DNA of 64,000 nt from Convolutriloba macropyga (Eukaryota): NCBI RefSeq assembly GCF_964194025.1, contig NC_134476.1:12896001-12960000 (forward strand), given 5' to 3'. Below, in pieces: positions 17,103 to 46,947 of this stretch (positions within the stretch are counted from its first letter, which is position 1; each line of letters starts with the position of its first letter). Both the position numbers and the translations under genes were made by a program. Under the pieces are notes generated by a model that made no database searches, was not told where the DNA came from, and worked only from the letters and a program-made list of their open reading frames with translations.

Positions 17103-17649
17103 CTGAAAAAATGAATTGTTAATAATTTGTAACGTACTATTGGATAGTTCAGCAATAAATGTAGCATTAGCTAATTTTCAAACTAGCCAGCACTTTTTTG
17201 CTTAACCAAGCCTACTGAATGCTCAATTTATGCAAAATGCATTTTCATAATATACGGTACACAATGTTCATTTTTCGGATTTTCAAACACCGTCGTTCGG
17301 ATTAGAAGATGAACCCAGTTGAAAGAGCACATAATTTATCTAAATTCACTTCACGGTTATATTGATTTCATGTAATTTTCACACCAGAAGCTTGTACATA
17401 TATATTATTATATTTGTGAATATGTAAGCATTTAGTCTCACGTTCACTGCTAACATTGAAAATTGAAACCTATAATCAGCACTTTACATTTGACTTTCAG
17501 TAGCAAACTGCCGCCAATTGAAAGAGCATTCCAGAAGGTTCTTGAACAAATTCTGACTAAAAAAGACATGACAGTAAAGATGAGCCAACTAATCGAGAGA
17601 GGCAACTAATCAATACCACTTTTGCTACGGAGAGAACACCGTTTCCTAC

Positions 17650-20271: not shown

Positions 20272-20603
20272 TCATTGTGTAAGATATAAATCATTTTGAC
20301 AAATGTAGTCATTAACTTGATCCGGTACTAGGTACTTAGCAGTGCTCCCTTTGGAAATCAAATCTCTAACTAAGGTCGAGCTGACATCATTGACTGAATC
20401 TGCCTGGACGAATAGAATGTTGTCCTTGTGCTTGGAAACTACAGGGTGCTGGGATAGGAGGGAGGTGGCATCGTAACCCTTTCTCTGGATACAGACTATA
20501 CCGTGGGTTCCCAAGATGTTGTCCAAATGCTGATGTGACCAGAGATCTGGAGTGTTGAAGGACAGCAGGAGGTCAGTGCCACAGAGCAGCCGACAGTTGA
20601 TGC
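20272..20603 (-). CDS. NMNAT: Nicotinamide/nicotinate mononucleotide adenylyltransferase, exon 3
   Basis: CTTTCAG acceptor, phase 1; LLCGTDLLLSF..PDLW, GIVCIQRKG, NDVSSTLVR, KYLVPDQVNDYI..NDLY. Confidence 0.95.
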
Positions 20604-21170
20604 CTGAAAGAGGAGCCCTGATCAATTTGTAAATAAAAAGAACAGAGAAACAGAGCGAAGTCGGTTACATCGACTTTCAAAAGATAATAGGAAACAAAGA
20701 ATAGAACGGAAAATAAATGGCAAAGTTCGACCCAAATCTGAAGAACAAATTTCTCCAAATTGAATTAGATTTATTACACATTTAAGCGGAAGTTATGAAC
20801 GCAAATAAAAGGTGTCAAGAGGACCCACATAGTATCTACCCCATAACGAAGATTATTCTTTGTAGAATGAAAATCAAATAGGAAAACAAAATTAACTTTC
20901 CCATGCATTTTCTTCCAACCCTGAAGAAAATAAATTCTAACTACAAACTACATGCTTAACAGACAAACAGTAGCATTTAATCAATGACGCAAACATGACA
21001 GAACGATGTTAGAGCAACACTAACTTTCTGAAAATTTGAAAAGTAAAAAAATAATTTCAAATCAACTAAAAATGCCAGAGGGCTAAAAGTTTTAACTTGA
21101 GCCAAGGACAACTAAGGTGTCCACTTTTTCTCGACACCAAAATTCAAACATAACCGACAAACGTCGGCCG

Positions 21171-21574
21171 AATTGCTCTCAGACGACCGATTGGCTTCGT
21201 CAGTAGCTGGCCACGGTTTAGTGAGGCTAGCTTTAGATTAATCGAAGGGGCGTAAGGTGAGCGCAGCGGGGGTGCAAAAGCGGATTGGGGGGACTGATGC
21301 GGGGGCGGTGCGTGGGTGGTGTGTGGGAGCAATTTCTAAGAACCGCCCTTCATACCATAAGTATAAGTCTCCAAAACTGTTTCTGTTACCCGCATACTTG
21401 AAGACTAGTGGGCTGAACGGCTCTAAGAGAACTTAATGCAAACTGGGCGCTACCTCTTTATTCCGTTTCTGAAGACGAAAGTCAAATTTGTCCGACGAAA
21501 AATCGGCCGAGCCGAAAATTGCATAAGAGACAAACAGGATTAACATTTGCTACAAACTGCTTCTGAGAGCAATT
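21171..21574. mobile_element. HINE-like family copy, G-rich subfamily (NMNAT intron 2)
   Basis: AATTGCTCTCAGA ... TCTGAGAGCAATT inverted termini; interior shared with 22540-22860 and 24130-24633. Confidence 0.7.
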
Positions 21575-22539
21575 CACAATGATTTCAACAATGATTTAAA
21601 AAGTGCCTGTTAAGTCAATTATGATAAGAACATTTTTACTTTAACTCATTGTTATTGAGGATCAGAGATGATGACATCACGCCACATAACAGCAGCNNNN
21701 NNNNNNNNNNNNNNNNNNNNNNNNNNNNNNNNNNNNNNNNNNNNNNNNNNNNNNNNNNNNNNNNNNNNNNNNNNNNNNNNNNNNNNNNNNNNNNNNNNNN
21801 NNNNNNNNNNNNNNNNNNNNNNNNNNNNNNNNNNNNNNNNNNNNNNNNNNNNNNNNAGAAGAAAAGAAACCCTAAACGACAGATACAGAAAGAGATAAAT
21901 ATTTTCCATGATGAGATACGGCTCTACAACTTCTAGTTTTCTAGCCTTTTTAGTAAATAAATCACATAGAAAAAAAACTAACAAGGCAAAATTAAAAAAG
22001 TTTTCAACTTCGCAGTACATAAAAACTTCGAAGTCATTTTTTGCCTCGAAAGTTCCGTTAGGGAACCCATCTCCGAGACTTAGAAAGATTTGTTGGCCAG
22101 TAATGATCGTTAAACTCAGAAAAGGACACGAAATATTGAAAAAAATTTAAAAACAAAAGCAAAATTTAACAAAATCTTGCCAAAATTCGTGATATTAATA
22201 TCTTCAGAAACATTTCATTGTCTCAAGAGACTATCGAGTATCTCTGTTTCAAGCCTGAAATAGTTTCACTGGCTCATAAACTCTACAAACAATGCAGAAG
22301 CTTATTATCAAACCTTGGAGGAGGTCCCAGGGCCCCTGGTGACGGAAAAAATCGAAAACATGAAAATGCAAAAAGCTTAAAAAATTGCTTAAATTTGTAA
22401 TAACGAAATCTTGAAAAACATTCCATTATCTATTAAGTATGCAGTAACATATTATCAAACCCTAGAGAAAATTCCGTGGCTTTTGAGGCCAGAGAAACTT
22501 AAAAAAGACAAAAATTGCAAGCTTTTTTAAAAGAAATTG

Positions 22540-22860
22540 TGGGGGCAACAGTGGGGCGGGGGTAACAGGGCGGGCGGGGGGGGGGGGGGGAGTAATAGTG
22601 GTGGGGGGTCAACAGCGGAGGGGTCTTCAACCTTTAAGAACCGCCCTTCACACCATAAGTAGAAGTCTCCAAAACAGTTTGAGTGGAAACACAGCTGAAA
22701 AGTTCTAAGAGCACTTAATGCCCACTGGGCGCTACCTGTTTATCCCGTTTTTGAGGAGGAAAAGTCAAAAGCGTCAGATGAAAAATCCGTCAAGCAAAAA
22801 ATCGCATAAAAAGACCGACAGGACTAATAGAATTGCTATAAACTTCGTTTGATGGCAATT
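22540..22860. mobile_element. HINE-like family copy, G-rich subfamily, 5'-truncated
   Basis: AAGAACCGCCCTTCACACCATAAGT...CTGGGCGCTACCTG...AATTGCTATAAACTTCGTTTGATGGCAATT. Confidence 0.65.
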
Positions 22861-24129
22861 AAAAATATATTCCAGTAACTTAAATTTTGCGCAAAATACG
22901 ATTCCATGACATGGTGATAAAAAATAGAAACTCGCAAAATCGACGCAACAATTCGCTCTTCCACCGGAACAGAGTTACGTCTGAGGACATTACAAATTAA
23001 AGCATCTGAATGTAATATACGGCCTTTCAATTTTTCGTTTCAAAATTGGCTCACAAAGTAGATTCAGGATTGACCTTTAGTATTTTTGGAACAATCTAAT
23101 AAGTATTTAAGAACGGTTCACAAAGCACCTTTTTAGAGATCGAACAAGCTCAGTAATATGTAACAAAAAGACGGTGAGCAGATTGTTGTTGATAAATGTC
23201 ATCGCCGAGATGCGTTCTTTTGCTAAAAATATAAATTTTATATTTTTGGAGAAGATCGATAAGGCTTAACGCATAAACAGAAGAGCATCCATTCACCGAA
23301 ACACCAGCTGAAATTCAATATTGGTTATATAATATTGAATGGGTCATTGTCGGGCACCGCAGCAACGTCTTTTTTGCAACGATCCCAAATAGTCCGATTA
23401 GCTTTGAATTAATTTCAATTTTATTAAATTTATTCTATTTATTTCAATCACGACGTCTATATTTCTGTCTCAAAATCTAAAAGAGACAACCAAATACTTG
23501 CAAACAGGCTGTTTCAAAACTTGAACAACGATGAGAAAGTTGAAATAAGGCACTTAATTAAGTCGTACAGTTTTCTGTGATTGAGCACAAATTTATTGAG
23601 AGTTAGCAAGTTTCCTATCGAATCGGAATCCTTTTGCATTGGTAGTTTTTCCAATGACAGTTACATTAGAGCCATCAACGAGGACGATGTAATCCTCCAG
23701 ACGCTATATCAGCGGAAGTCAGTTAGGTACGAGCACCAATAATGGACTCGGAATTGAACCTTTTGTGACCCAACGTTCATTTTCACCCATAAGGATAAAC
23801 CATTTATATTAAACCGTTCTTTTCTCTCATCTAAGTATGATTCAAACCACCCTCATGCCTTTCCGCATAGGTCACATAAATTTTCAAGAACAATCTCGAA
23901 TTAAATTGTACCAAATGCTTCCTTAAGGACAGGAAAAACTAGTCATTTCCAATAAATTTTAGACGAATCTTGTTTAAAAAAACAAGAACATCAATGGTAC
24001 CGTGGCGCTTTCTGAAGTCTTATTGGATTGAAGGAGGTGAAGTTTATCCAGTCAACTGTAAACTAGACTGAACATGGATAGCCTTTTCGAATATTCCAAA
24101 AAATAGAAAACAACCGACTAACGTCGGGC

Positions 24130-24633
24130 GAATAGCTCGCAAACAATTGACGAGCTAGCTGTTGGCTTCGTCAGCAGCTAGCCACGGTTTATTGAGACTA
24201 GCTTTAGCTTAGAGGAAGGGGCGTGAGGTGATCGCAACGGGGGGCAACAGTTGGGGGGGGGGGGCACCGGTGGGAGGGGGGTCTTTGGCTGCACGGGGCC
24301 CCTGCGGCCTAAACGATGTGCACAGGTGGGGATGGGGGGGGGGTTGAAATAAGGGGGAGGGGCTTGCTGTGGGAGGGGGGGGGGGGGTTAACCTACAGAA
24401 ATCGCCCTTAACACCATAAGTAGATGTCTTCAAAACAGTTTCTGCTCGCATACTTGGAGACGAGTGAGCTGAAAGGCTCTAAGAGAACTTAATGCCCGCT
24501 GGGCGCTACCTGTTTACTCTGTTTTTGAGGATGAAAAGTCAAATGGGTCAAGCGAATAATCGGTGAGGAGAAAAATCGCATAAAAGAGACCAATAGGACT
24601 AATATAATGGCTTAACTTCTTTTGAGGGCAATT
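24130..24633. mobile_element. HINE-like family copy, G-rich subfamily
   Basis: Aligns to 21150-21574, including the upstream AACCGAC..ACGTCGG flank; ends GAGGGCAATTAAAAA. Confidence 0.65.
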
Positions 24634-25182
24634 AAAAAAACATACCCGGCAGATTGCCGGAAAATAGCCGCCGTTGATTCCAATAAGCATGATTGGGATT
24701 GAAATAACAGAAGATATTGAAAAAAAAAGATTTTTGTACAAAAACATTTTTTTAAGTCCGATTTATTTTGATGGCATTTCGTAGTTGAACACACTTCTGT
24801 TTCATAGAGAGAGGCTACAGGGGCTACTATCAATAACAATAAGCATTAGAGATGGTAAATAAGACTTATAGGAACGACGTTCAAATAGCGGGCATCTAAA
24901 ATTGGGCTTTATGGGTTTATCCCGCTTCTATTTCTGACTTCAATTTTTTATACTGATTCTGTTCATTTTGAATTGCTCTGCTGAGCAACTGATGTTCAAA
25001 ATCACTTTTAGCAGAATGAGAGAAGAGAGAAACTAGCCTAGAGAAGTCAAAAAGATTTCACGCAAAATGTTGAAAAGGCGGCAAAATAAGGTAAAGCGAA
25101 ACATTTTTTAATTCGACGAAGTAAAAAACATAGCAGGACAAGTCCTGACTAACAATTCAAAGAATTTTCATTGACTAAACAG

Positions 25183-25490
25183 AAAAACTAGACCTAGAAT
25201 GGACTATGAGTGAATTGAGAAAACCATTTTTAAAAAATCAGATAAAAAATAAGAAAAAAAAAACAAAATATCAATGTCAAAATGCCGCATGTGAACAAAA
25301 AAAACCACTAGCGAGAAATGAAAATTTCATTCAAACAAAAAACTAGGCCTTGAATGAGCTGTGAATGGATTGCGAAAACCATTTCGAAAAAAATCCGATC
25401 CAAAAAATCGAAAAAACAGTAAAAATCAGAGTGAAATTGCCGCATGTGAACAAAAAACCACTACAGAGAAACCGAATTTTTGTTCAAACA
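25183..25490 (+). repeat. Two diverged tandem copies of a ~155-170-bp unit
   Basis: AAAAACTAG.CCT.GAATG...GAAAACCATTT...GCCGCATGTGAACAAAAAA..CCACTA.. occurs twice. Confidence 0.7.
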
Positions 25491-26554
25491 CCAGTTTCGC
25501 ACTCTATTTTAAAATTAGAGCGAAAAAAATTCACGCCGCAAAACCACTCGCTTTTTCGCTCCATTTCCCGTTTCGGCGTGACCAAAATCACTACTCCAAT
25601 TTGATTTCAAAAATCATGAAAAGGTGTGAACAGATCTTAGAAAAAAAAGACAGCGCCCCAATACAATTCAAATTCTTTGAATTGTAAAAAATAGGAGCGC
25701 TATAATAGCCGGCTGAGATGAGGGCGGCTATTAATAATTAGATAGTTCTGTTGATCTAGAACAGGAGCTATGACCTTTTGAATTCTGATCCTCTCCGGAA
25801 CAACCACGAGACAGATGCGCGTGCACTCCCTACGCTCTATTATGAGTTAGGTCGTGAAAGTTAGTGAGTAGGCGCAACTGGGATGAATTTTCTGCAAAAT
25901 ACTTATATTTATCATCTTGACCCCTCATTTTGTTCGGGTGACCACTGCTCACCATTAAGTTCAGTTGATGAAGTAACTCATGAATTTAACAGATAATAAT
26001 TACAGATTTTGATAGCGGAAAAGGAGTGATAAGTGCTTTTCAAACCAACGTTCATTCTTTACTGAGCAAACAGTGATTGAAATGTGCATTTTTGGCCGGC
26101 TTAAGCAGCTTAGGAAAAATCTTTTCCATAAACGATTTACGAGAATAGAACATTCAGAGTCACGGCGGCAGCTAACTTAACAATAACATTTAGATTTTCT
26201 CGTTGCCTAGGGATTTTTTTTGATGTAGCTTACTTAAAACCAAACTAACTTCATCTAATGAAGTTTGTCTCAGAAACATTAATTTAAAACCAGGCTTAAT
26301 GGGGGTGGGGCAACTTATTCAATATTTATTTTGGAGCAGACAGAGCAAATTTGAAGGTAATGAATTATTGCACAAATCTAACAATGCTATTTACTTATTT
26401 GCTTTGTTTTTCTTTTAGTATCATTCAGAGTTCATAAGTTTGCCTTTAGTCTCCAACGCTTGCTTGGAATTTTTAAGGTAGCAAGTTTCTTCGCAGTTGT
26501 TACAGATGTTTTCGAAGATCTTCATATCTTTGCAGGTATGAAAATATAAAACAG

Positions 26555-26766
26555 CAATTTCGGCGCACTTATCATTCAACTTTTAGTTTTAAATTGCCGC
26601 CAAATGAGTTTAGCTACTTGAAATTGTGAATGAGGGAGAACTTTAGTTCACGCAAAACGCAGAATGTCAAGGGCGTAAAAGTCACTCGAAACGTCAAAAA
26701 ACGGTCAAGCAAAAAATTTTGCATAAAAAAGACACACACGTTTACAATTGGTTCTCTTCGAGAGTT
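26555..26766. mobile_element. HINE-like family partial copy
   Basis: Matches 18826-18995 (TTTTAG..TTAAATTGCCGCCAA...CACGCAAAA...AAAAGTCACTCG). Confidence 0.6.
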
Positions 26767-27018
26767 AATAATATATTGTTCCAATTTAATTGTTCCTTCG
26801 TGTTGGATTAATTCATTGTTCCAGCTTCGTGTTGGAACAATTAATAAGCAGGTTAAGTATATATTCCACTGAACTATCAATCTTGCGCAAATCAAACTAC
26901 TGAAAGTTGATTTTTCCAAGAACCCTTCTAACTATCCCGATACTCATGTTTTCCATTGTACTCATTGTTATCGTTTTACAGATATGAACAAACTATCTTT
27001 TAGCGTTTCATTTCCTAC

Positions 27019-27206
27019 CTGGGAACTCTGTCTGTAGTTGCGCAGAGTAGTGGTCAAGGACATCCGAGGTGCGACTCCAGTCTTCCTGGATAGTCTCCCA
27101 GTCTTCACATCGTAACCACCGGCTACTCTGGCACGCTAACTGGCACATTTCCACTCTGTGCTTGGCTGCAATCAACCCTTTCTTCCCGTACTTATCGTGC
27201 GCTGGA
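27019..27206 (-). CDS. NMNAT: NMNAT exon 2 (absent from the ORF track)
   Basis: Manual translation: (S)PAHDKYGKKGLIAAKHRVEMCQLACQSSRWLRCEDWETIQEDWSRTSDVLDHYSAQLQTEFP; CAG acceptor and GTAGG donor; phase fits exon 3. Confidence 0.95.
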
Positions 27207-27786
27207 CTGTGTCAAGTATTGTTTCCATTGTTAAAAATTGAGTAAAAACTTAAACAAAAAAATGGTAAATTTCTGAAGGTTACACACTATTCTGTCCACT
27301 TAAATTAGTCCAAAACCAAAAGCGGATATAAAAAAATTCCTCAATCCAACTCCTCAAGTTGCGTCATAAGTAAACACAAATATTGCACAAATTATTCCTT
27401 GTTTCCGCTAAAAAAATATGACCACTTAATTGGTATTTAACTTTATATACTTCGTACTTTTATACAGCGTTCCATTGCACTTTTTACACATCGTTTGGAA
27501 ATTCAAATCTAATCATTGTGCCCTTAAAAAGTATTTACCGATTTATTGTGGAGTCCCACCTTTCACAAGGCTATTACCAATGCAAAGCCTCCGCGCACTA
27601 CCTTGTTCACACCGGCTAATCAAAACAATTTTATTCGCATTAAAAGGAAGCATATTCATATGATTGCTTAATCTTGATAGCTCTAAATTATAAATACTGT
27701 TTGTAAATTGGTTCAATTCCAGTTCTTACTAAAATAAACACTAATTTCCGATCGACAACCAGCTTTTTATGGTGTGGAAACAATTC

Positions 27787-27932
27787 CTCATTATCCCAAC
27801 TTTGACTGTGTGGCCAGCCTTTTCCAGAGCAAACTTGGCAGTCTCAAACAGGCGGAGATGCATGTTAGTCGGAGGGTTGAAACACCCGAACTCTATCAAG
27901 GCTATTAGCATTCTTGATACACCAGTTCGCAT
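27787..27932 (-). CDS. NMNAT: NMNAT exon 1; spliced product about 221 aa
   Basis: GCFNPPTNMHLRLFE is the GxFxPxT/HxxH nucleotidyltransferase motif. The donor site is non-canonical or shifted (see findings). Confidence 0.92.
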
Positions 27933-28278
27933 TTCCTCTTTACAAAATGTGGAAATTATGATGGTTCAGATGTCATATCTAAAAATAGCTCAAATTTGCA
28001 TAAGAAGTTTTCACTACGCCTACCTGATGTTCGGTATCCCCAATCTCACGCAAAACTTTTAGCAATAAAATTACAAAAAAAAATTTAAAGTCACTGCTTT
28101 ACAACTTTAAAGTTGCACCAAACGATTTCATAAAAATGGTTTCTGGCCATTATGGACCCAGCAGCTCAAATATAGGCCCTAATTACCTAAAAACTGGAGT
28201 TGTCGATTGTCTTGAGTTTCTATAAAACGAAAATCGGATAAAACGCGTTCAATTTTGTTTCTTGATTAACCAGTCAGT

Positions 28279-28497
28279 TTAAGAATTGATTTTATCAGTT
28301 GAGAGGGTATAATTCTGCCATCCGTTACAATATGGCGAAAAATTGTCGTTGGTTCTCCGGCAGCATCTAACTAAAGCTTCAATCTCTCGTTCACATTTGG
28401 AGTGCTGGAACCGGTTCTGGTCCAGACATTTCTGGATATCACAGGCTAGCCTCTTACAAACTTCTGATGAGTAATCGCCCGATTGTTTAGATGGCAT
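28279..28497 (-). CDS. CMC4: Cx9C motif-containing protein 4 (p8-MTCP1-like), 72 aa
   Basis: CKRLACDIQKCLDQNRFQHSKCEREIEALVRCC...SPYCNGW matches the CMC4 cysteine pattern C.K.AC.IQKCL..N.....KC...I..L..CC.....S..C.G. Confidence 0.9.
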   Translation of the reverse strand: MPSKQSGDYSSEVCKRLACDIQKCLDQNRFQHSKCEREIEALVRCCRRTNDNFSPYCNGWQNYTLSTDKINS

Positions 28498-29559
28498 TCC
28501 ATTTGATCTTAAAGTCACAAATGGGAGGAGCTGCTCATTGCACGATTACGCAAGTTTTCGCAAATTCAACGCACGAATTAACCTGATATTAATATCATTT
28601 TAAATGTGATAGCGTTGATTGGCAAAATGTATGTTGTATTTGCATTTATGCGTTTGCCAAGATTGTATTTGATTTCGTAGCTGGTTACAAAAGAAATTAA
28701 AAATTGCACTTTTTTTTTGCAAACTTGAAGTTGAAATCATTACAAAGCCATTTGTTTAAATCAACGAGGATCGTCTAAGGAGGTTCGAAAACTGTTAGTC
28801 AAATACTACCATCACTCTCAATCAATTGCTTAAATTTGGGAATGAGATAGCGCTCTAGATCACGGAAAGCTAAAAAAGACAAGGGCGACAAAGACACGAA
28901 AGACTAAAAAGGTCCATCAAAACTTGCATAAAATACACACCACATTAATTGCTTCAAAAAGATAGGAATCTTAAAGTTTTGCGACTTTAAGGTTTGCTAA
29001 ATAATCGTGACTTCAACACTGTTATAATTCCAGGACGTTTTAAAGCTTTCTTAGCTTGCTACATGCCACCTGTTCATCTCTAGCTTATGAAATTAAAACA
29101 GCTGGATGCAGCTAGAATCCATGAACATAGGTCCCTGAACATGTATTTTTAGAACCTTGACCCAATTCATTTTACAAGGTTTATAGTTAAAAATGTGGCA
29201 AATTTTACGGTTTTTTTGAACAGACAATAAAATTCAATAAATGCCAAACATTCAGTAGTGGCGTGAGGCAGAAAACACAATTTCGCAAATTTTCCCTCGT
29301 TTCCACAAGCAGTGAGAATATTTTCCGGTGTTACTTGAACAAGTATAAAAAATTGGATCTGTTAAAACCTTCAGCAGTGAGATATCAGGTATTAATGAGG
29401 TAAAAATTGAACATTTTGCATCTATTTAATATACGAATAAAATGAGCCTCTTTTTGAAAAATCCTTAAATGATAAAATTTGGTTCCCGTACGTTGATTTT
29501 AAAATAGATAGAAAAAAATAATCTGATAGCAATTTGGCCGTAAAAAGCTTGAAAAGTTG

Positions 29560-32500
29560 CGGCACGTTTAAAGCCGCCATCTTTTGTGTTAAAACATTCA
29601 CCTAATTGTTGTGATAAACTTATTAAATAGCTTCAGATACTGCTTGAGACCTGGGCTCCTGCACCATGGTTAACCTTCAAAGCGCTATTGATCAACTGAG
29701 TATTGACAACCCCAGCCTGGCAAATATATTGTATGTTGTGAACAGTGAGATGACTGCTCTCAAGAAAGACATTCAGAGAAAAGATAAAGACATCGTGTAT
29801 CTCAACAACTGTATAGAGGACCTTTCCGAGAGAGTGCTACAACTAGAGCGCTACAGTAGAAAAGACTGTCTTATATTCAACAATTTTCCCTATGAGCCGA
29901 TATCTAACAAGACGCTGCAGGACCAAGTCATCAATTTCATCAACGACATCTTCAACTCAAATATCCCGCAGGAAAATCTGAAAGCCTGTCATTTCCTCAA
30001 GAGTGGAGTAGAAGGGCAGTGCTCGGTGATTGTTAAATTTGTTTATTTCGCTGACAAATTTTTTTTTTGTGGAGATCCCAATCATTTCTCTATGGAGTTA
30101 AGAACAGACGAAACCAACAGTTTATAAGCATGAAAGAGTGCCTCCCTGAAAAAGACAGGGAAATTCTACAGTATGCTGTAACCGACAAACATCTCAAAGT
30201 TTCTACTAATAACTGTGCTGTGAAAGTTGAAGTCACGAACAACGAAGGGAGACGAGAGTTTGTGGAGGTACGAACAGAAAATGACGTCGATAGATTTGAA
30301 AACGTGGCAACTAAGAGGAGGACTCAAAAACAAGTAAAATCTGTGCCGTCACAACCAATGGAAGTAAATGCATTCGGCAATCCGAATGTGCAGTCAAACA
30401 GATTCACTGCTTCAAGCCTTCAACTACCACCATTGACCTACCATCCCATTGCCAACTATCATCAACCAATAATCGGTAGTAAGAGAGCAAGAGAGCCTAC
30501 TCCGGCAGAGGACCGGTATGAGCAGCTACTCCAGGACCTAAGGGAAAAAGTATCAGACCCCGAAACATTGAAAGACTGTGCTGGGTATGGTAGGAAACTC
30601 TCCAAATCCTATAAGTTGCGCTGTAGATAATGAACATATCTCATCCAATGATACTTTTCGTGCTGAAATCTGTTAAGGTGCTACATATTAACACGCGTTC
30701 TCTCAGAAAACACTATAATGAACAAGAGGCACTTATAGTAAGTCAGCAACAATCTCCAGAAATCTTAAGTCTTACTGAAACATGGTTAAATCCTAATGAT
30801 GAACCTAACTGCTTCACTCTTCCAAATGACAAAGTGTTTAACAAAGCTAGAGACACTCGTGGGGGAGGCGTTATGATACAGTGTTTGAACTCTGTCTCTT
30901 TTATTGATGAATTTGACTCTCCGTTTGAAGAATGCCTTTTCCTAAAGGTCAAATACCATGGTAATATATTTTTGATAGCTGTGGTTTATAATCCACCGAG
31001 AATAAATAAACTGCTTTTTATCGATAAACTTGATCAATTTTTGGAAAGTTTATCGAAGGGTTTGCCTAACTTGATTATGGGAAACATCAACATAGACGTA
31101 CTAAAGCAAAACGATGCAACTCTAAGATATCTAGCAACTATAGATGCAAATGGATGCAACTTTTTAAACAACAAGATAACTCGTCCTGCCTCAAACGGAG
31201 GGTCATGCTTAGATCATGCTATCTGCATAAATTTTGATTTAGGGATGATCTCTGTTGAAGTTCTAATGCATGAAAATTATAGTGATCATTTCCCTGTGCT
31301 TTTCCAAGCGGATCTCAAATCAAAGAACCATCCTTCCAGTAAATATATTACTTTCAGAGACACCAGTTATCTAAAATCAAGTGAAAGCATCAATTCCTTT
31401 TGCGAGTGCCTTGTTCATGTTCTTAAAAACAAAGAAATAACTAGTTTTGGGACTTTTCATTCCACTTTTATCGAAAATTTAAACAAATATGCGCCGATAA
31501 AACGCGTAGCTCCATCAAAGGTTTTCTCAAGACCAAAATACTAAACTAACAGGAAAATTAATTTATTAAACAAGCGAAACCAAGTGCATTGTAAATGGAA
31601 AAATAGCAAAAACCCACAGTATCTTCAAACCTTTAAAGAAATCAGAGTACGTGTAGAAAATGAACTCAAAAAATCGAAGAAAAACTTTTATTTCTCTAAA
31701 TTCAATAAATGTATTGGTGATACAAAACAAATAAATAAACTCTTGAATGACTTGAGAGGTAAGAGTACTGATGCTCGTCGAATTGATCATCCCTGCTTAA
31801 AGACAGGCAGTATAATCAATGAAGACATCCAGATTGCTGAAAAATTCAATGAGCATTTCTCTAATATTGCGCAGACATTGCATGGCACTATAAAAGAATC
31901 AAATGTCAGTGCTACACAGTTGTTAGAGTGTAATGGATTTTCATTTTGGCTGAGACCCACAACTATTTCGGAAATAGAAAACATCATTCAAGATCTCGAT
32001 AACAAAACCTCATCTGGTGCTGATCACGTAAGCAATATAATCGTTAAAAGCTGTTACCGGCAAATAGCGCCTGTTTTGTCTGGTGTTATCAACAGTTCAT
32101 TCAAAACAGGCATTTTCCCACCAGAGTTGAAGCAATCAATTATAATACCACTTCACAAAGGTGATTGCAAAAGCGATCTGAACAATTATTGTCCCATTTC
32201 TCTTCTAATGGTTTTCAGCAAAGTGTTTGAAAGAGCAATGTACAACAGAGTACACTCATTTGTCGAAAGTTTTGATCTTCTGCATAAAAAGCAGTTTGAA
32301 TTTCGAAAAAAGCATTCGACAGTCGACGCTATTGCAGAAATCACGGAAAAAGTAAGAGAAAACTATCAATCAAATCACATGATTACTTTATTTTTGGATT
32401 TATCAAAAGCCTTCGATTGTATCGATCACGCCATTTTGTTGAAGAAGCTAGATTTCATTGGTATCAGAGGACCATGCAAAGAATGGATGAGCAGTTACTT

Positions 32501-33600
32501 AAAATATAGAATGCAATTTGTTTCCTGCAATGGCGTTTATTCTGACCAGAAACCAATTGTGGGATACACCAAGGGTCAGTATTGGGTCCTCTTCTTTTTC
32601 TGCTCTACGTAAATGATTTACCGCATGTTTGTAAGACCAGTGAAGTTTTTCAGTTTGCTGATGACACAAACGTAACTGCCATCAAGTGCTCCCATGAAGA
32701 ATTAACGGCAGACATCAAATCTGTGTCCAATTGGCTCGATAGCAACAGGCTTAAACTAAATATCAAAAAAACAATACAGGTCAACATATCACTAGGAAGT
32801 GCCTCTAGTTCACCCCTTGTTCTGAACGGTGTTGAAATGAAAATAAAAAACTTGTCGTGTCGTTATTTAGGCGTAATCATTGACAATAAACTATCATTCA
32901 AGCAGCATGTAAATTGCATTATCAATAAACTCAGTAGACAATGTGGAATACTGTGTAAGTTAAGACACTACGTTCCCCAAATGCTTTTTACTACAGTACT
33001 ATCAAATGAATATAAAGCCAATAATTCAATATGGCCCTTTAGTATATGGCTGTACATCTTATACAGCCTTTGTTCCTATTGGAGATATGCAAAGAAAAAT
33101 TATGCGTATAATTCATTTTAAATCTTTCAAAGAGAGCGTTACCAAGACAATGCTGGAAACTAACACACCGACAGTTCATGAACTTTATGTTTACGAGTTA
33201 GTTAAGGTTTTTTCCCGATCTATCCTCAAGATGCACGCAGAAAGTTTTCTTAATAATTTATTTTCTTTTGAAAAAACAAGCATTTATTCAACCAGAAGAT
33301 CAACTAAAAACTATCTAAGTGTTCCAATGACAAAAAACAAACTACAGCGCTGCTCTATGAAGTATCGTGGAAGTAAACTGTATAACCTTTTGCATGAAAA
33401 TTCCATCATCGACGGTGAAGACCTTACAAATCAAAACATTTCGTCGACTGTTCATAGGATTTAAGATAATTATATTTTAGGAAATCAAGAGCTGTCAAGG
33501 GAAGTCTTCGGTCTGTAGTCGTAGAAATAATCATTAGCCAGTATTCAGTTATCTATGATAGTTTCTAAGACCCTTTCTTCCTTAAATATAATTAATCGAA
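29560..33600 (+). mobile_element. CR1/L2-type non-LTR retrotransposon 2, near full length, lightly degenerate
   Basis: ORF1 29666-30630 (frameshift in a T run at ~30060); ORF2 ~30630-33518 with APE (LTETWL, YNPP, SDHFP) and RT (PISLL, FLDLSKAFD, FADDT, YLGVIID). Boundaries approximate. Confidence 0.93.
29573..29583 (+). promoter_or_regulatory. YY1-like motif at the probable 5' end of LINE 2
   Basis: GCCGCCATCTT matches the CCGCCATNTT consensus and lies ~85 bp upstream of ORF1. Confidence 0.3.
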
Positions 33601-42942: not shown

Positions 42943-45900
42943 CTAGCAATAAGCAAGCGCGACTGTATTAGCAGGCATCGCGTGAACTTCTGCCTCAATT
43001 TCGGATCCGCTGCCGACATCAGTGACGTTTGAATCACTTGCTGTGTTCTTAGCAGGACTTGACGACGATCCTTCGGCAATATGATCTTTTGCCGTGCCCG
43101 TAATTTTGGGCTTAGCTACAGAAGCAGTGGTACTTGAACTCTGCGGTAGTTGTTTCTGCTGCTGATGTTGTATCCGCTTTTTAGCTTTGGCAATAGTTGA
43201 GGCGGAAACACCTGTGCATGTCGAGGATCTTTCAGATTCCTCGTCTGTTGGTGAGTTATGTTCAATGACACTTCGGTCAACTGACGTAGCATCAGAATAG
43301 GCGCCTGGATTGGGTTCGCTATCCTCGTGGGGGCTCATAGTGCTATATCCGTGGTCACTGTCTGTAGCGTAACTCCTCGTATGGTGGTGATGTCTCCGAT
43401 CATTCCGAATTGCGATAATAGGCAATGGGTGCAGCATCGGGTTCATGTACCCTATATCATCCTCTTCCTGCTCTAAGGAGTAGTCATCAACTTCATGTGC
43501 TCCCATTTGTACGTTAACATCAGACGTGTAGTTGGCATTGTACATTGCAATCATTTGTCGACGTTGTCGTTCGTGCCGAATTAAGAACACAGCCAGCGCG
43601 ATAACTATTGAGCTGGCCAGCACGCCTCCGGCTACAGGACCTATAGGGGTAGTAGTCGAGGAACCACCACTATGATGAGCTAAACGCTGGTTCTGGCTAT
43701 CGTAGTATCTTGGTTTCGCGTAAGGGGAAAATCCCCGAACTCGCATGTAACAATTCGTCAATTGATCACACTGGTGATTTTGCATTGGAAATATGACCCT
43801 GGAATTGTTCGAACGGAAATAGACCTGTTCGAACTCGCACCAGCGACATTCTCGATTCTGATCACATTTACTTTGCTCAGTTAGCGACGAGCATCGGAAC
43901 CCAATGCAATTACTGGCATCGTGGAACTTATGCTTGTCCAAAGCTCCGATTTTCAACACCTCGGGTTGAGGTTCGCAAGCAACCCAATTGTCAACAGAAT
44001 GCGGTTCTTCAGCCCTGCAATTATCGTCAGCACTGTCCAGGTAAACACAGGGACACCAGCAACGATTGTCAAAAGGCCGTCTCAAATAACATCGATCCTT
44101 ATGAGTTCGCGGACAGAAACACAACTGGAAGTTTACTGTTTCGTCCATTACTCCCCGGATTCCATGGAAAAGATTGGTTCCAGCCAGACGTCGAACACTA
44201 AACGCGGTTCCGTTGTTTAACAGGTAGGATTGGCGCTTGCCCGAATAGTCAAGAGAAAATTTTTGAGAGAACCTGAAATTGTCTTGTCTGTAATCATAAC
44301 ATTCTTCCTTGCTGTAGAAACCGTCGAGTTGACTGATATACAGAAAAAAGTCCGATTCTCTATAGGCAACACTGAACATATTTATGTCTCGCCATTTGTA
44401 TCCGACACTGTTCTTTGAGTCTAAGCTCGAATTCCACATTCGTGAATAGGCAACAATGTTACCTTCCTCGTTAAACAGGAAACAATCCTTCCCATTTTCT
44501 GGCTGGCAATCTGGATTTTGGAATTTCTGTGTATTGTACAACGTATGCGAGTACAAACTTTCAACAGTGACGTCAAATCCAACAACTACGAAGGTCGTGT
44601 TAGTTAGCGGAACCTTCCATGACACAGACACGACATAGCCAGCTTGAGATTCGTCCAGCCACGGTGAAGAAAAATGCTGGTGAAAACCACCTTCTGCGGC
44701 TTGTTTGAACCAGTTCAGCTGATTTATATCCATATTTTTGTCCAGCTTAATAGCTGGCTGAATTATCATAAACCCGTCACTAGTAGCCGCATACCTGCGA
44801 ATAAATGAAGTGTTAATTATACTTTCTGGGCTCCACTTGAATGCCAACGACCAAATATACTTCAAGCTCACGACAGAATGATTTCTGAACAAGGGTTCCC
44901 TCGGATTGTGTCGAACATCGTGCAAATTGAGGAAGAACTGCTCAAACCTTTCGTTTTCAATTAATTCCAGACCTCGATAATGTAAATGAAGAGCGCGCTT
45001 TGATACGAACAGTCCAATAATGCCCTTATAAGGAAGGGACAGAGTGGTGAAATATTTACACACACGCTCTTGATTATCTACTGAATCGTGGTACATAATG
45101 TTAGGCTTGAATTTAAGACCAGACTCATTCGAAACGACGTTCGAATCCCCCTCGCGTCCACTTTTTTCGCCTACGGGAACGTTTTTCAACGCCAGTTCTA
45201 ACTTCACATCATACTCGTACTGGTCTCCAATAAGCACTGTACAAACTACGAATGGACTGTTAGCAAGGCGACTACACGAATAACGGTACAACTTATCAAG
45301 CTGTACATCAATTTCTGCTGTCTTTTTGGTCCTGATAATTTTCTGGAAAAATGTTGAGGCATCTTTTTTGAGCACAGTCGAGAAGTAGTAGTGAAGAGGA
45401 GGTTCGCAAAGAGTAATTGAGACAAAACCTTTATCACGATTATAATTTGTCACTCTGTGATAGATTACGGATCCCTTTTCATCAACAATAAACAGCGTTT
45501 TATTCTCATCTGTATGGTAATTCAACTCGTTCAGTATTGATTCCAAATTAATATCGACACCCACTACGCCGTCAACATCGCCATTCTCGGCATTTTTGAC
45601 AGGAGCCGAAATTGTCATGACCATTTCTCCCTTTTCGTTCTTCGGGTACGAATAGGTAAGGTTGTAATTTCGGGCATTGACAAAATGGGTAGAATTCTTG
45701 GGGAAAACTTGGGCTATCGAGAGCAAGTCTGGTCGCCACATTGGTGTGATCACTTTCACGCTTTTGCTTTTCAGAAGTGCGTCAACCTCTCGCCAATCGG
45801 CGAGTTTGGAAGTTGACCAAAATTCGTCACTGAGTAAACTGGAATACATCATGATATTGCCTACGCGGAAAACAGCCAGGTTTAAATTCTTCATTAGTGG

Positions 45901-46947
45901 CTTCAACTTCATTATCTGTTCATGCTGACTTTTAAAGTTACTCGGCTTCATGCCGCTGAAAACGACCAGAACCTTTTCTGTATCAGCATCCGAGCTGTTA
46001 AGTACTTTCAGAACAGACTCCATTTCCTCCGCAAGGCTTCGGTAATTCTCAGTTTTATTAGCATCGAGATACTTGTCCACATTATCTGAGAGGCTGTGAG
46101 TGCTGAAGAATCCGAGCACATTTTTTCTACTTCCACAATTCACAAACTTCTGGGAACTACTTACATTTTCTGGCCAGCCAGAAATGGTGAACCGATCTGC
46201 GGGTCCAGCGAACTGCGCGATGGAAAAGGCAAAGTTTGCAGCCGTGGTAAGAAACAGTGTTCCAGTGCTATTACCAGAGATAGTTTGCGAATCGAAGAGA
46301 AAAGCCCAGTGACGTTTGGATGGAACTATTGCACTGGCGATTGCTTCCTTCTTGAAATTATGCAACACTGGTGAAAATTCAGCTCCGCACATCGAGCTAT
46401 CCTTCTTGGCGGGGTAGACAAAAGAACTGACACACTTACTCCGAATCGACACATACCACTGTTCGTTCACACTTTTATGCCAGATATCGTGACGTTTCCA
46501 CATTTTCACGACATCTTCTGACAGATGAGTTGTGGAATTGCACTGAATGTACTCTACGGGAAACGTTCTCTGGCATGCTAAAGCCTTGTTAATCCAGACT
46601 CCTTGGGATTTTTGAGTAGCATAAAGCGAGTCATCACAACAATCTCGGTTCGTATGTTGAAGTGATTCGTTAGTGAGACCATTCCTGAGTGTGCTCGAGA
46701 TAAGAGTCTTCGACTGATTGATAGTGTCTTCAATTGACAGGAATAACTTTTCCAGGCTCTGTCTCGTTTCGTTAATTAACGAGATTCGTTTGTCAGTCCT
46801 GGTCCAATTGGAGCTATTGTACTCCGGCTGTTTCAATGTGAGTGCTTCATTAGTAAAAATTTTGAGCTTTAGCTCCAATTGCGAAGTCGGTTCCGCCTGA
46901 TATTCGGAAGAGAGATACAGAAAGCACAGGAAATAAGATATTAACAT
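42943..46947 (-). CDS. CACHD1: VWFA and cache domain-containing protein 1 homolog, single exon, about 1334 aa
   Basis: Signal peptide MLISYFLCFLYLS; Cache motifs (GVVGVDINL, FSSPWLDESQAGYVVSVS, VVGFDVT); Cys-rich region; TM PIGPVAGGVL...; cytoplasmic DHGYSTMSPHEDSE typical of CACHD1. Confidence 0.92.
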   Translation of the reverse strand: MLISYFLCFLYLSSEYQAEPTSQLELKLKIFTNEALTLKQPEYNSSNWTRTDKRISLINETRQSLEKLFLSIEDTINQSKTLISSTLRNGLTNESLQHTNRDCCDDSLYATQKSQGVWINKALACQRTFPVEYIQCNSTTHLSEDVVKMWKRHDIWHKSVNEQWYVSIRSKCVSSFVYPAKKDSSMCGAEFSPVLHNFKKEAIASAIVPSKRHWAFLFDSQTISGNSTGTLFLTTAANFAFSIAQFAGPADRFTISGWPENVSSSQKFVNCGSRKNVLGFFSTHSLSDNVDKYLDANKTENYRSLAEEMESVLKVLNSSDADTEKVLVVFSGMKPSNFKSQHEQIMKLKPLMKNLNLAVFRVGNIMMYSSLLSDEFWSTSKLADWREVDALLKSKSVKVITPMWRPDLLSIAQVFPKNSTHFVNARNYNLTYSYPKNEKGEMVMTISAPVKNAENGDVDGVVGVDINLESILNELNYHTDENKTLFIVDEKGSVIYHRVTNYNRDKGFVSITLCEPPLHYYFSTVLKKDASTFFQKIIRTKKTAEIDVQLDKLYRYSCSRLANSPFVVCTVLIGDQYEYDVKLELALKNVPVGEKSGREGDSNVVSNESGLKFKPNIMYHDSVDNQERVCKYFTTLSLPYKGIIGLFVSKRALHLHYRGLELIENERFEQFFLNLHDVRHNPREPLFRNHSVVSLKYIWSLAFKWSPESIINTSFIRRYAATSDGFMIIQPAIKLDKNMDINQLNWFKQAAEGGFHQHFSSPWLDESQAGYVVSVSWKVPLTNTTFVVVGFDVTVESLYSHTLYNTQKFQNPDCQPENGKDCFLFNEEGNIVAYSRMWNSSLDSKNSVGYKWRDINMFSVAYRESDFFLYISQLDGFYSKEECYDYRQDNFRFSQKFSLDYSGKRQSYLLNNGTAFSVRRLAGTNLFHGIRGVMDETVNFQLCFCPRTHKDRCYLRRPFDNRCWCPCVYLDSADDNCRAEEPHSVDNWVACEPQPEVLKIGALDKHKFHDASNCIGFRCSSLTEQSKCDQNRECRWCEFEQVYFRSNNSRVIFPMQNHQCDQLTNCYMRVRGFSPYAKPRYYDSQNQRLAHHSGGSSTTTPIGPVAGGVLASSIVIALAVFLIRHERQRRQMIAMYNANYTSDVNVQMGAHEVDDYSLEQEEDDIGYMNPMLHPLPIIAIRNDRRHHHHTRSYATDSDHGYSTMSPHEDSEPNPGAYSDATSVDRSVIEHNSPTDEESERSSTCTGVSASTIAKAKKRIQHQQQKQLPQSSSTTASVAKPKITGTAKDHIAEGSSSSPAKNTASDSNVTDVGSGSEIEAEVHAMPANTVALAYC

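Follow-up and report, generated by a model that had tools for sequence, protein, structure and literature searches.

Structure and identity of the NMNAT gene

The minus strand of the window that we analyzed, a 64,000-nt stretch of genomic DNA (NC_134476.1, positions 12,896,001 to 12,960,000), carries the single NMNAT gene known for the acoel Convolutriloba macropyga, which has three exons and encodes nicotinamide/nicotinic acid mononucleotide adenylyltransferase, an enzyme of NAD synthesis. A conserved motif of this enzyme is rebuilt only if the first intron begins with GA instead of GT. The locus raises the question of whether a GA-AG junction is really used, and if so, where such an intron came from and how it might be removed.

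Exon 1 (27787-27978) starts with the first base of the mature mRNA (27978), directly after the AG acceptor for spliced-leader trans-splicing (27979-27980), where the genome reads tttttag/ATATGACA. It comprises the 5' UTR (27978-27933), the ATG (27932-27930) and coding sequence as far as ...GGG ATA ATG AG at 27787, and was delimited by a cDNA piece (27787-27979) and a structure match. Intron 1 (27207-27786, 580 nt) begins GAATTG (27786-27781), ends ...GACACAG at 27207, and is a phase 2 intron that splits the codon of Ser49 (AG/T); when we re-read the sequence, all coordinates and letters that the original prediction had quoted for this intron proved correct. Exon 2 (27019-27206), placed by a cDNA piece (27018-27206) and by its match to human NMNAT1, opens with T CCA GCG CAC GAT at 27206 and closes with ...TTC CCA G. 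It is followed by intron 2 (20604-27018, 6415 nt), a canonical GT-AG intron (GT at 27018-27017, AG at 20605-20604) that has a pyrimidine tract and contains an N gap, and by the coding part of exon 3 (20272-20603), which was identified by structure match and ends with a TGA stop codon at 20274-20272.

Each of the three exons matches human NMNAT1/3 chains. The alignment of exon 1 to human NMNAT1 (solved structure) reaches residue 47, that of exon 2 begins at S49-P50 of the same protein (E 2e-13), and exon 3 matches solved NMNAT structures with an E value of 1e-22, while the product of the gene matches the PF01467 profile with an E value of 1.8e-19. An NMNAT3-like protein of C. macropyga at NCBI (P0001, 221 aa), whose residues 1-48 and C terminus correspond to exons 1 and 3, respectively, agrees with the GA-AG model at every residue, GIMSPAHD among them, indicating that the GA-AG junction is already present in the public annotation. 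In its sequence GCFNPPTNMH, SSTLVR and GIMSPAHD represent the nucleotidyltransferase motifs GxFxPxT/HxxH and SxTxxR and the eukaryotic G-I-x-S-P core, respectively. A word search of proteins returned a single NMNAT for C. macropyga.

In an alignment of 58 homologs, Ser49 was found in 56/58 sequences and Pro50 in 58/58, and the rebuilt GIMSPAHD motif thus reflects real conservation and not chance. Together with the public protein and the transcript described below, this bears out the earlier proposal that the join of 27787 to 27206 restores G-I-x-S-P-x-x-D. The in-frame alternative that had been pointed out, GT at 27781-27780 with an unused acceptor AG at 27202-27203 as its partner, does exist in the sequence. 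It would yield GIMRNSHD and, as had been anticipated, destroy the SP pair by putting Arg-Asn in place of the two conserved residues. Gene finders limited to GT donors would take this decoy 5 nt downstream and so wreck a motif of the catalytic core.

Transcript and genomic evidence for a GA-AG junction

Transcript evidence came from run X5 (2016), which belongs to a study other than that of the assembly runs and was recognized as cDNA by its behavior, namely its exon-only coverage, a poly(A) contig end at 28234 and the presence of a spliced leader; none of the runs listed was recorded as RNA. An X5 contig of 887 nt (depth 169) aligns to 27018-27206 and 27787-27979, and its joint (27206->27787) skips exactly 580 nt, whose plus-strand ends CT..TC correspond to GA..AG on the gene strand. 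The mRNA joined in this way encodes GIM-SP-AHD and not GIMRNSHD. All evidence from the public sequencing runs is in the form of assembled contigs, in which minor isoforms may stay hidden; among these contigs this was the sole transcript contig to span the intron 1 site, and none carried the GT-AG alternative joint (27781/27202). A look at transcripts across exons 1 and 2, which had been suggested with the original prediction, thus turned up the join of 27787 to 27206 and no message encoding GIMRNSHD.

On its 3' side, the X5 contig runs from a loose end at 27018 into the letters of 20602-20573 in exon 3, which confirms intron 2 as well. At its 5' end are 22 letters beyond 27979 that are absent from the genome at that site. 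These letters coincide with the 3' portion of the leader that has been published from another acoel, Symsagittifera roscoffensis (PMC9911081), indicating that the contig represents a mature, trans-spliced NMNAT mRNA. It is vanishingly improbable that the joint is an artifact of reverse transcriptase switching templates across a hairpin and that the gene is a pseudogene. A hairpin and a 2-nt direct repeat do flank the skipped segment, but 2 nt are very few for a template switch, and the skip restores the exact frame along with residues that relatives encode unbroken. Moreover, the only transcript contig at the site carries the joint, at a depth of 169, and the protein search found one NMNAT only for the species.

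Since exon 1 and intron 1 each end in AG, the joint formally fixes the cut to within 2 nt ('both' = 2 in X5), and cuts placed 1 or 2 nt upstream, giving GG..CA or AG..AC, would produce the same mRNA. The second of these would resemble the introns of Fritillaria; AG-AC is the type found most often among the introns of Fritillaria borealis (PMC11282704). Nevertheless, only GA..AG keeps both the G at +1 and the 3' AG, as in the two canonical introns of the window that we examined, and the AG/GAA flank is that of known GA introns (PMC7072748). Upstream cuts are accordingly very unlikely in our estimation, and we describe the intron as GA-AG throughout.

Contigs from two DNA runs made from two samples (X1 and X2) equaled the window at every base from 26721 to 28500, including the GA at 27786-27785. 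The presence of GA in two further samples rules out an assembly error. The genomic check that had been proposed for this dinucleotide thus showed GA and no GT, and the concession that a sequencing error or variant might have turned GT into GA found no support, as neither set of contigs differed from the reference. Under a more elaborate form of this alternative, GA would be a strain variant or error, the spliced cDNA would derive from a GT allele, and the reference allele would be defective or would use the GT 5 nt downstream. The X5 cDNA does differ from the window at three exon 1 bases and so comes from an individual other than the source of the DNA; GA was read in the DNA samples and the splice in the exon-only cDNA of another individual. 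The 3' arm of the terminal helix described below also implies an ancestral GT. Yet GA occurs with zero differences in two DNA samples, elsewhere the reference gene has no defect and agrees fully with the public model, and the downstream GT would swap S49 (56/58) and P50 (58/58) for R and N. We consider a strain variant or error of this kind highly improbable. The X5 joint, the DNA contigs and the identical public protein all agree with a true GA-AG intron, as had been predicted.

Absence of intron 1 from relatives

Three acoel genomic contigs from ENA assemblies (L001, L002 and L003) contain the NMNAT locus of relatives. In each of them, NMNAT residues 1-112 are encoded in one unbroken exon, and the only intron in common with C. 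macropyga is intron 2, located after ...FPG and GT-AG in all cases. At the insertion point, L001 reads ATC AGT CCT where C. macropyga has ATG AG/intron/T CCA. A spliced-leader-capped mRNA contig from a fourth relative (L006) encodes GIISPAHD, and in Nematostella and Branchiostoma the ...GI(F/I)SPAHD... exon is uninterrupted at the intron 1 site. As in the window, NMNAT has CACHD1 on its upstream side in L002 and Fcf1 on its downstream side in L001, and this synteny supports the orthology of the relatives' NMNAT loci. Because the codon is uninterrupted in three acoels, a cnidarian and amphioxus, intron 1 was gained in the C. macropyga lineage; judged from these sequence comparisons, it is a lineage-specific and recent gain. 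A tblastx comparison of the window with the relatives' 20-kb loci, in which NMNAT, Fcf1 and CACHD1 are the only genes in common, found no further lineage-specific introns.

The two flanking genes showed features of their own. The rRNA-processing gene Fcf1 occupies 17103-17649 (minus strand) of the window and about 11720-12030 of L001, with a GT-AG intron whose position agrees between the two, and the gap between NMNAT and Fcf1 measures ~200 nt in L001 vs. ~2.2 kb in the window. CACHD1 is a single unbroken open reading frame of ~1,300 codons both in the window (42946-46944, minus strand) and in L002 (1687-5622); the absence of introns is unusual for such a large animal gene.

Terminal helix and splicing signals of intron 1

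The ends of intron 1 carry a 10-nt inverted repeat with 100% complementarity, which is predicted to close the intron as a helix. The 5' arm, ATTGTTTCCA, extends from +3 to +12 (27775-27784) and contains the decoy GT (27781-27780, +6/+7). The 3' arm, TGGAAACAAT, extends from -21 to -12 (27227-27218), and with A-11 and C-10, which take part in the fold, the 3' element covers 27216-27227. In the minimum-energy fold of the full intron with its exon flanks, the helix persists and grows by the pair G+1:C-10 and by the pairing of two bases of the exon with U-9 and U-8, so that three extra pairs (A-U, G.U and G-C) span the donor while A+2 faces A-11 as a mismatch. The reverse complement of the 3' arm is GTATTGTTTCCA, as compared with GAATTGTTTCCA at the actual 5' end of the intron. 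That the 3' arm read backwards gives GTATTGTTTCCA suggests that intron 1 may descend from a GT intron with 12 paired bases.

The helix stands as one case, since the relatives have no counterpart of intron 1 in which covariation could show. Two controls were compared with it. When the first 20 and last 40 bases of 19,678 random 580-nt segments of the window were compared, runs of at least 10 Watson-Crick pairs between the ends were found in 29 segments (0.15%), and a duplex energy of -12.4 kcal/mol or better was found in 644 (3.3%); by energy the helix is moderately unusual owing to its A/U-rich composition. The second control consisted of six GT-AG introns at conserved positions, namely NMNAT intron 2 and the Fcf1 intron of the window together with the relatives' orthologs. 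These had end-to-end runs of 4-5 bp, energies of -3 to -6 kcal/mol and a pyrimidine fraction of 0.52-0.95 upstream of the AG, as compared to 10 bp, -12.4 kcal/mol and 0.38 for intron 1. Intron 1 lacks a pyrimidine tract and has a weak donor (AG/GAATTG). A candidate branch site, TTTTTAAC (27230-27237, with its A at -25, position 27231), can be recognized just upstream of the 3' arm.

U12-type introns are marked by the donor /RTATCCTT and by TCCTTAAC as branch site, which lies 10-15 nt from their 3' end. We rejected this class for intron 1, the donor of which is GAATTGTT (that of the decoy is GTTTCCAC) and the nearest branch-like sequence of which, TTTTTAAC, stops 23 nt short of the 3' end. A search of the whole window with Rfam at the gathering threshold gave no matches, and hence no snRNA genes there. 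A scan of the window for G-N..AG segments with hairpin ends whose removal would restore an open reading frame gave 676 candidates, which amount to noise. The most promising of them, within CACHD1 (46882-46799) and with a 12-bp stem and a GC donor, was refuted by a gap-free alignment to the CACHD1 gene of a relative.

Origin of intron 1

Intron 1 shares with transposon-derived (MITE-like) introns, or introners, a lineage-specific position, but it showed no multi-copy family: blastn of the intron against the window and the loci of the relatives found it once only, and the ends of the intron are at single-copy depth in the DNA runs, in which only 27438-27571 is repeated. A motif search for a family of helix arms likewise found none. 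The 10-12 nt inverted repeat is subterminal, with 9-11 unpaired nt outside the 3' arm, and the direct repeat at the borders consists of the dinucleotide AG only, with no clear target-site duplication beyond it. An origin from a transposon would fit the inverted ends and the new position, but it is no more than a possibility, as no family and no duplication beyond AG were found and 9-11 nt lie outside the arm. Probably the helix is what remains of inverted termini that the inserted DNA once had.

The repeated part of the intron, 27438-27571, was present in DNA-run contigs at a depth 6- to 16-fold above that of the rest of the intron, which marks it as a dispersed repeat. An identical 151-nt piece corresponding to 27482-27632 appeared at depth 2 in run X6, which is labeled as another organism, and this may reflect carry-over between libraries.

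Splicing mechanism and comparison with known introns

The observations as a whole are very probably best explained by a gained GA-AG intron that is removed by the major spliceosome with a relaxed requirement at +2, the helix being probably a relic of the insertion and most likely also an aid to splicing. The major spliceosome would have to tolerate a base other than U at +2, in the same AG/GAA context as that of the GA introns of Eurytemora and Oikopleura. By pairing the ends, the helix would bring the weak donor beside the branch and acceptor region, and it would also conceal the in-frame decoy GT at +6/+7. Perhaps the ancestor was a GT intron with 12 paired bases in which the T at +2 later changed to A. 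Such help is the most likely role of the helix, although burial of the donor should as a rule impede the binding of U1.

GA-AG introns are on record for a copepod, Eurytemora affinis, and a tunicate, Oikopleura dioica (Frey & Pucker 2020, PMC7072748, which cites Robertson 2017). Like them, intron 1 is a GA..AG intron of an animal nuclear gene, supported by transcripts and with AG before and A after the GA. It differs in occurring in an acoel, in being a demonstrable gain and in having a helix of 10+3 bp; the text consulted on those two species makes no mention of paired ends or species-specific positions. In human FGFR genes, a GA 5' splice site is used efficiently with a GT nearby (Brackenridge et al. 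2003, as summarized in PMC7072748). There, the GT that assists is found 6 nt before the GA, whereas the GT in intron 1 lies 5 nt downstream, within the helix, and is apparently unused.

Paired ends are known from other systems. According to PMC11282704 (summarizing Henriet et al. 2019), the non-canonical introns of Fritillaria borealis occupy species-specific positions and GT-AG introns conserved ones; inverted repeats mark the ends of the non-canonical introns, whose removal falls to a major spliceosome that has adapted to them. Intron 1 resembles them in being non-canonical, in its lineage-specific position and in its inverted ends. However, the Fritillaria introns are mostly AG-AC or AG-AT, with clear target-site duplications and repeat families, whereas intron 1 keeps G+1 and AG, and neither a target-site duplication beyond AG nor a repeat family was found for it. 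In the introner elements of Amoebophrya, inverted repeats of 8-20 nt join the ends and short direct repeats overlap the borders, and GC/GA-AG donors are common in dinoflagellates (PMC7789003). These are multi-copy elements of protists with highly variable border dinucleotides, in contrast to the single-copy ends of an intron in an animal gene.

The nonconventional introns of euglenids also combine end pairing with border direct repeats and the lack of a pyrimidine tract (PMC12501133; PMC11282704), which raises the alternative that intron 1 is removed independently of the spliceosome, with the terminal helix and not the dinucleotides setting the cuts. The paired ends, the missing pyrimidine tract, the weak donor and the short direct repeat at the borders are indeed traits in common with euglenid introns. 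The geometry departs from the euglenid rule, however: there, a 3-bp CAG/CTG pairing links +4..+6 with -8..-6, the border dinucleotides are not conserved, the excised product is circular and removal is probably non-spliceosomal, whereas in intron 1 a 10-bp pairing links +3..+12 with -21..-12. Intron 1 also keeps the G at +1 and the terminal AG, and it has a plausible candidate branch site at -25. By its pairing offsets and its retention of G..AG, intron 1 thus falls outside the euglenid type. We know of no structure-guided pathway of the euglenid kind in animals, and its operation here is very unlikely.

A bolder proposal, which we regard as a speculative possibility less likely to be right than wrong, is that the end-pairing helix is a required element of a second, structure-assisted splicing route in acoels that serves new insertions, and that the base at +2 (GA, GG or GC) is irrelevant to it. 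If true, acoels would have two functionally distinct classes of nuclear introns: old ones of the GT-AG type, which have pyrimidine tracts, and new ones of a G-N type, which lack such tracts and are closed by a helix.

Intron 1 makes this gene a clean case: an essential, single-copy enzyme gene with a recent non-GT intron that is shown to be spliced and can be compared to its old, canonical intron 2. Such introns have so far been described in tunicates, a copepod, dinoflagellates and euglenids, and we found no paper on them in acoels in the literature searched. What is new here is the gain, the end-pairing helix with its random and GT-AG controls, and the tract-less acceptor together with a decoy within the helix. 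By itself, the case hints that relaxed donors and paired ends are tolerated in the new introns of a bilaterian lineage that branched off early.

Neighboring genes and repeats

Directly upstream of NMNAT and on the same strand is a small CHCH gene (28279-28518, minus strand) with a twin Cx9C motif, similar to CMC4. The poly(A) of its cDNA is at 28234, and the spliced leader of NMNAT follows 254 nt further on, an operon-like layout. In the metatranscriptome contig of a related acoel (L006:1-918), the CHCH and NMNAT open reading frames are on one leader-capped mRNA with abutting stop and start codons (TAGATGATG), and from its sequence this message looks bicistronic. No CHCH gene was present within 10 kb upstream of NMNAT in L001, L002 or L003.

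A very high-copy short repeat at 26567-26767 reached depths of up to 10^5 in the DNA runs, with many variant joints and loose ends; the cDNA run and organism B contained it as well. On the plus strand, 30 nt that match the acoel spliced leader perfectly (29601-29630) directly head a LINE-type retrotransposon, whose open reading frames (29666-33464, plus strand) are endonuclease- and reverse-transcriptase-like.
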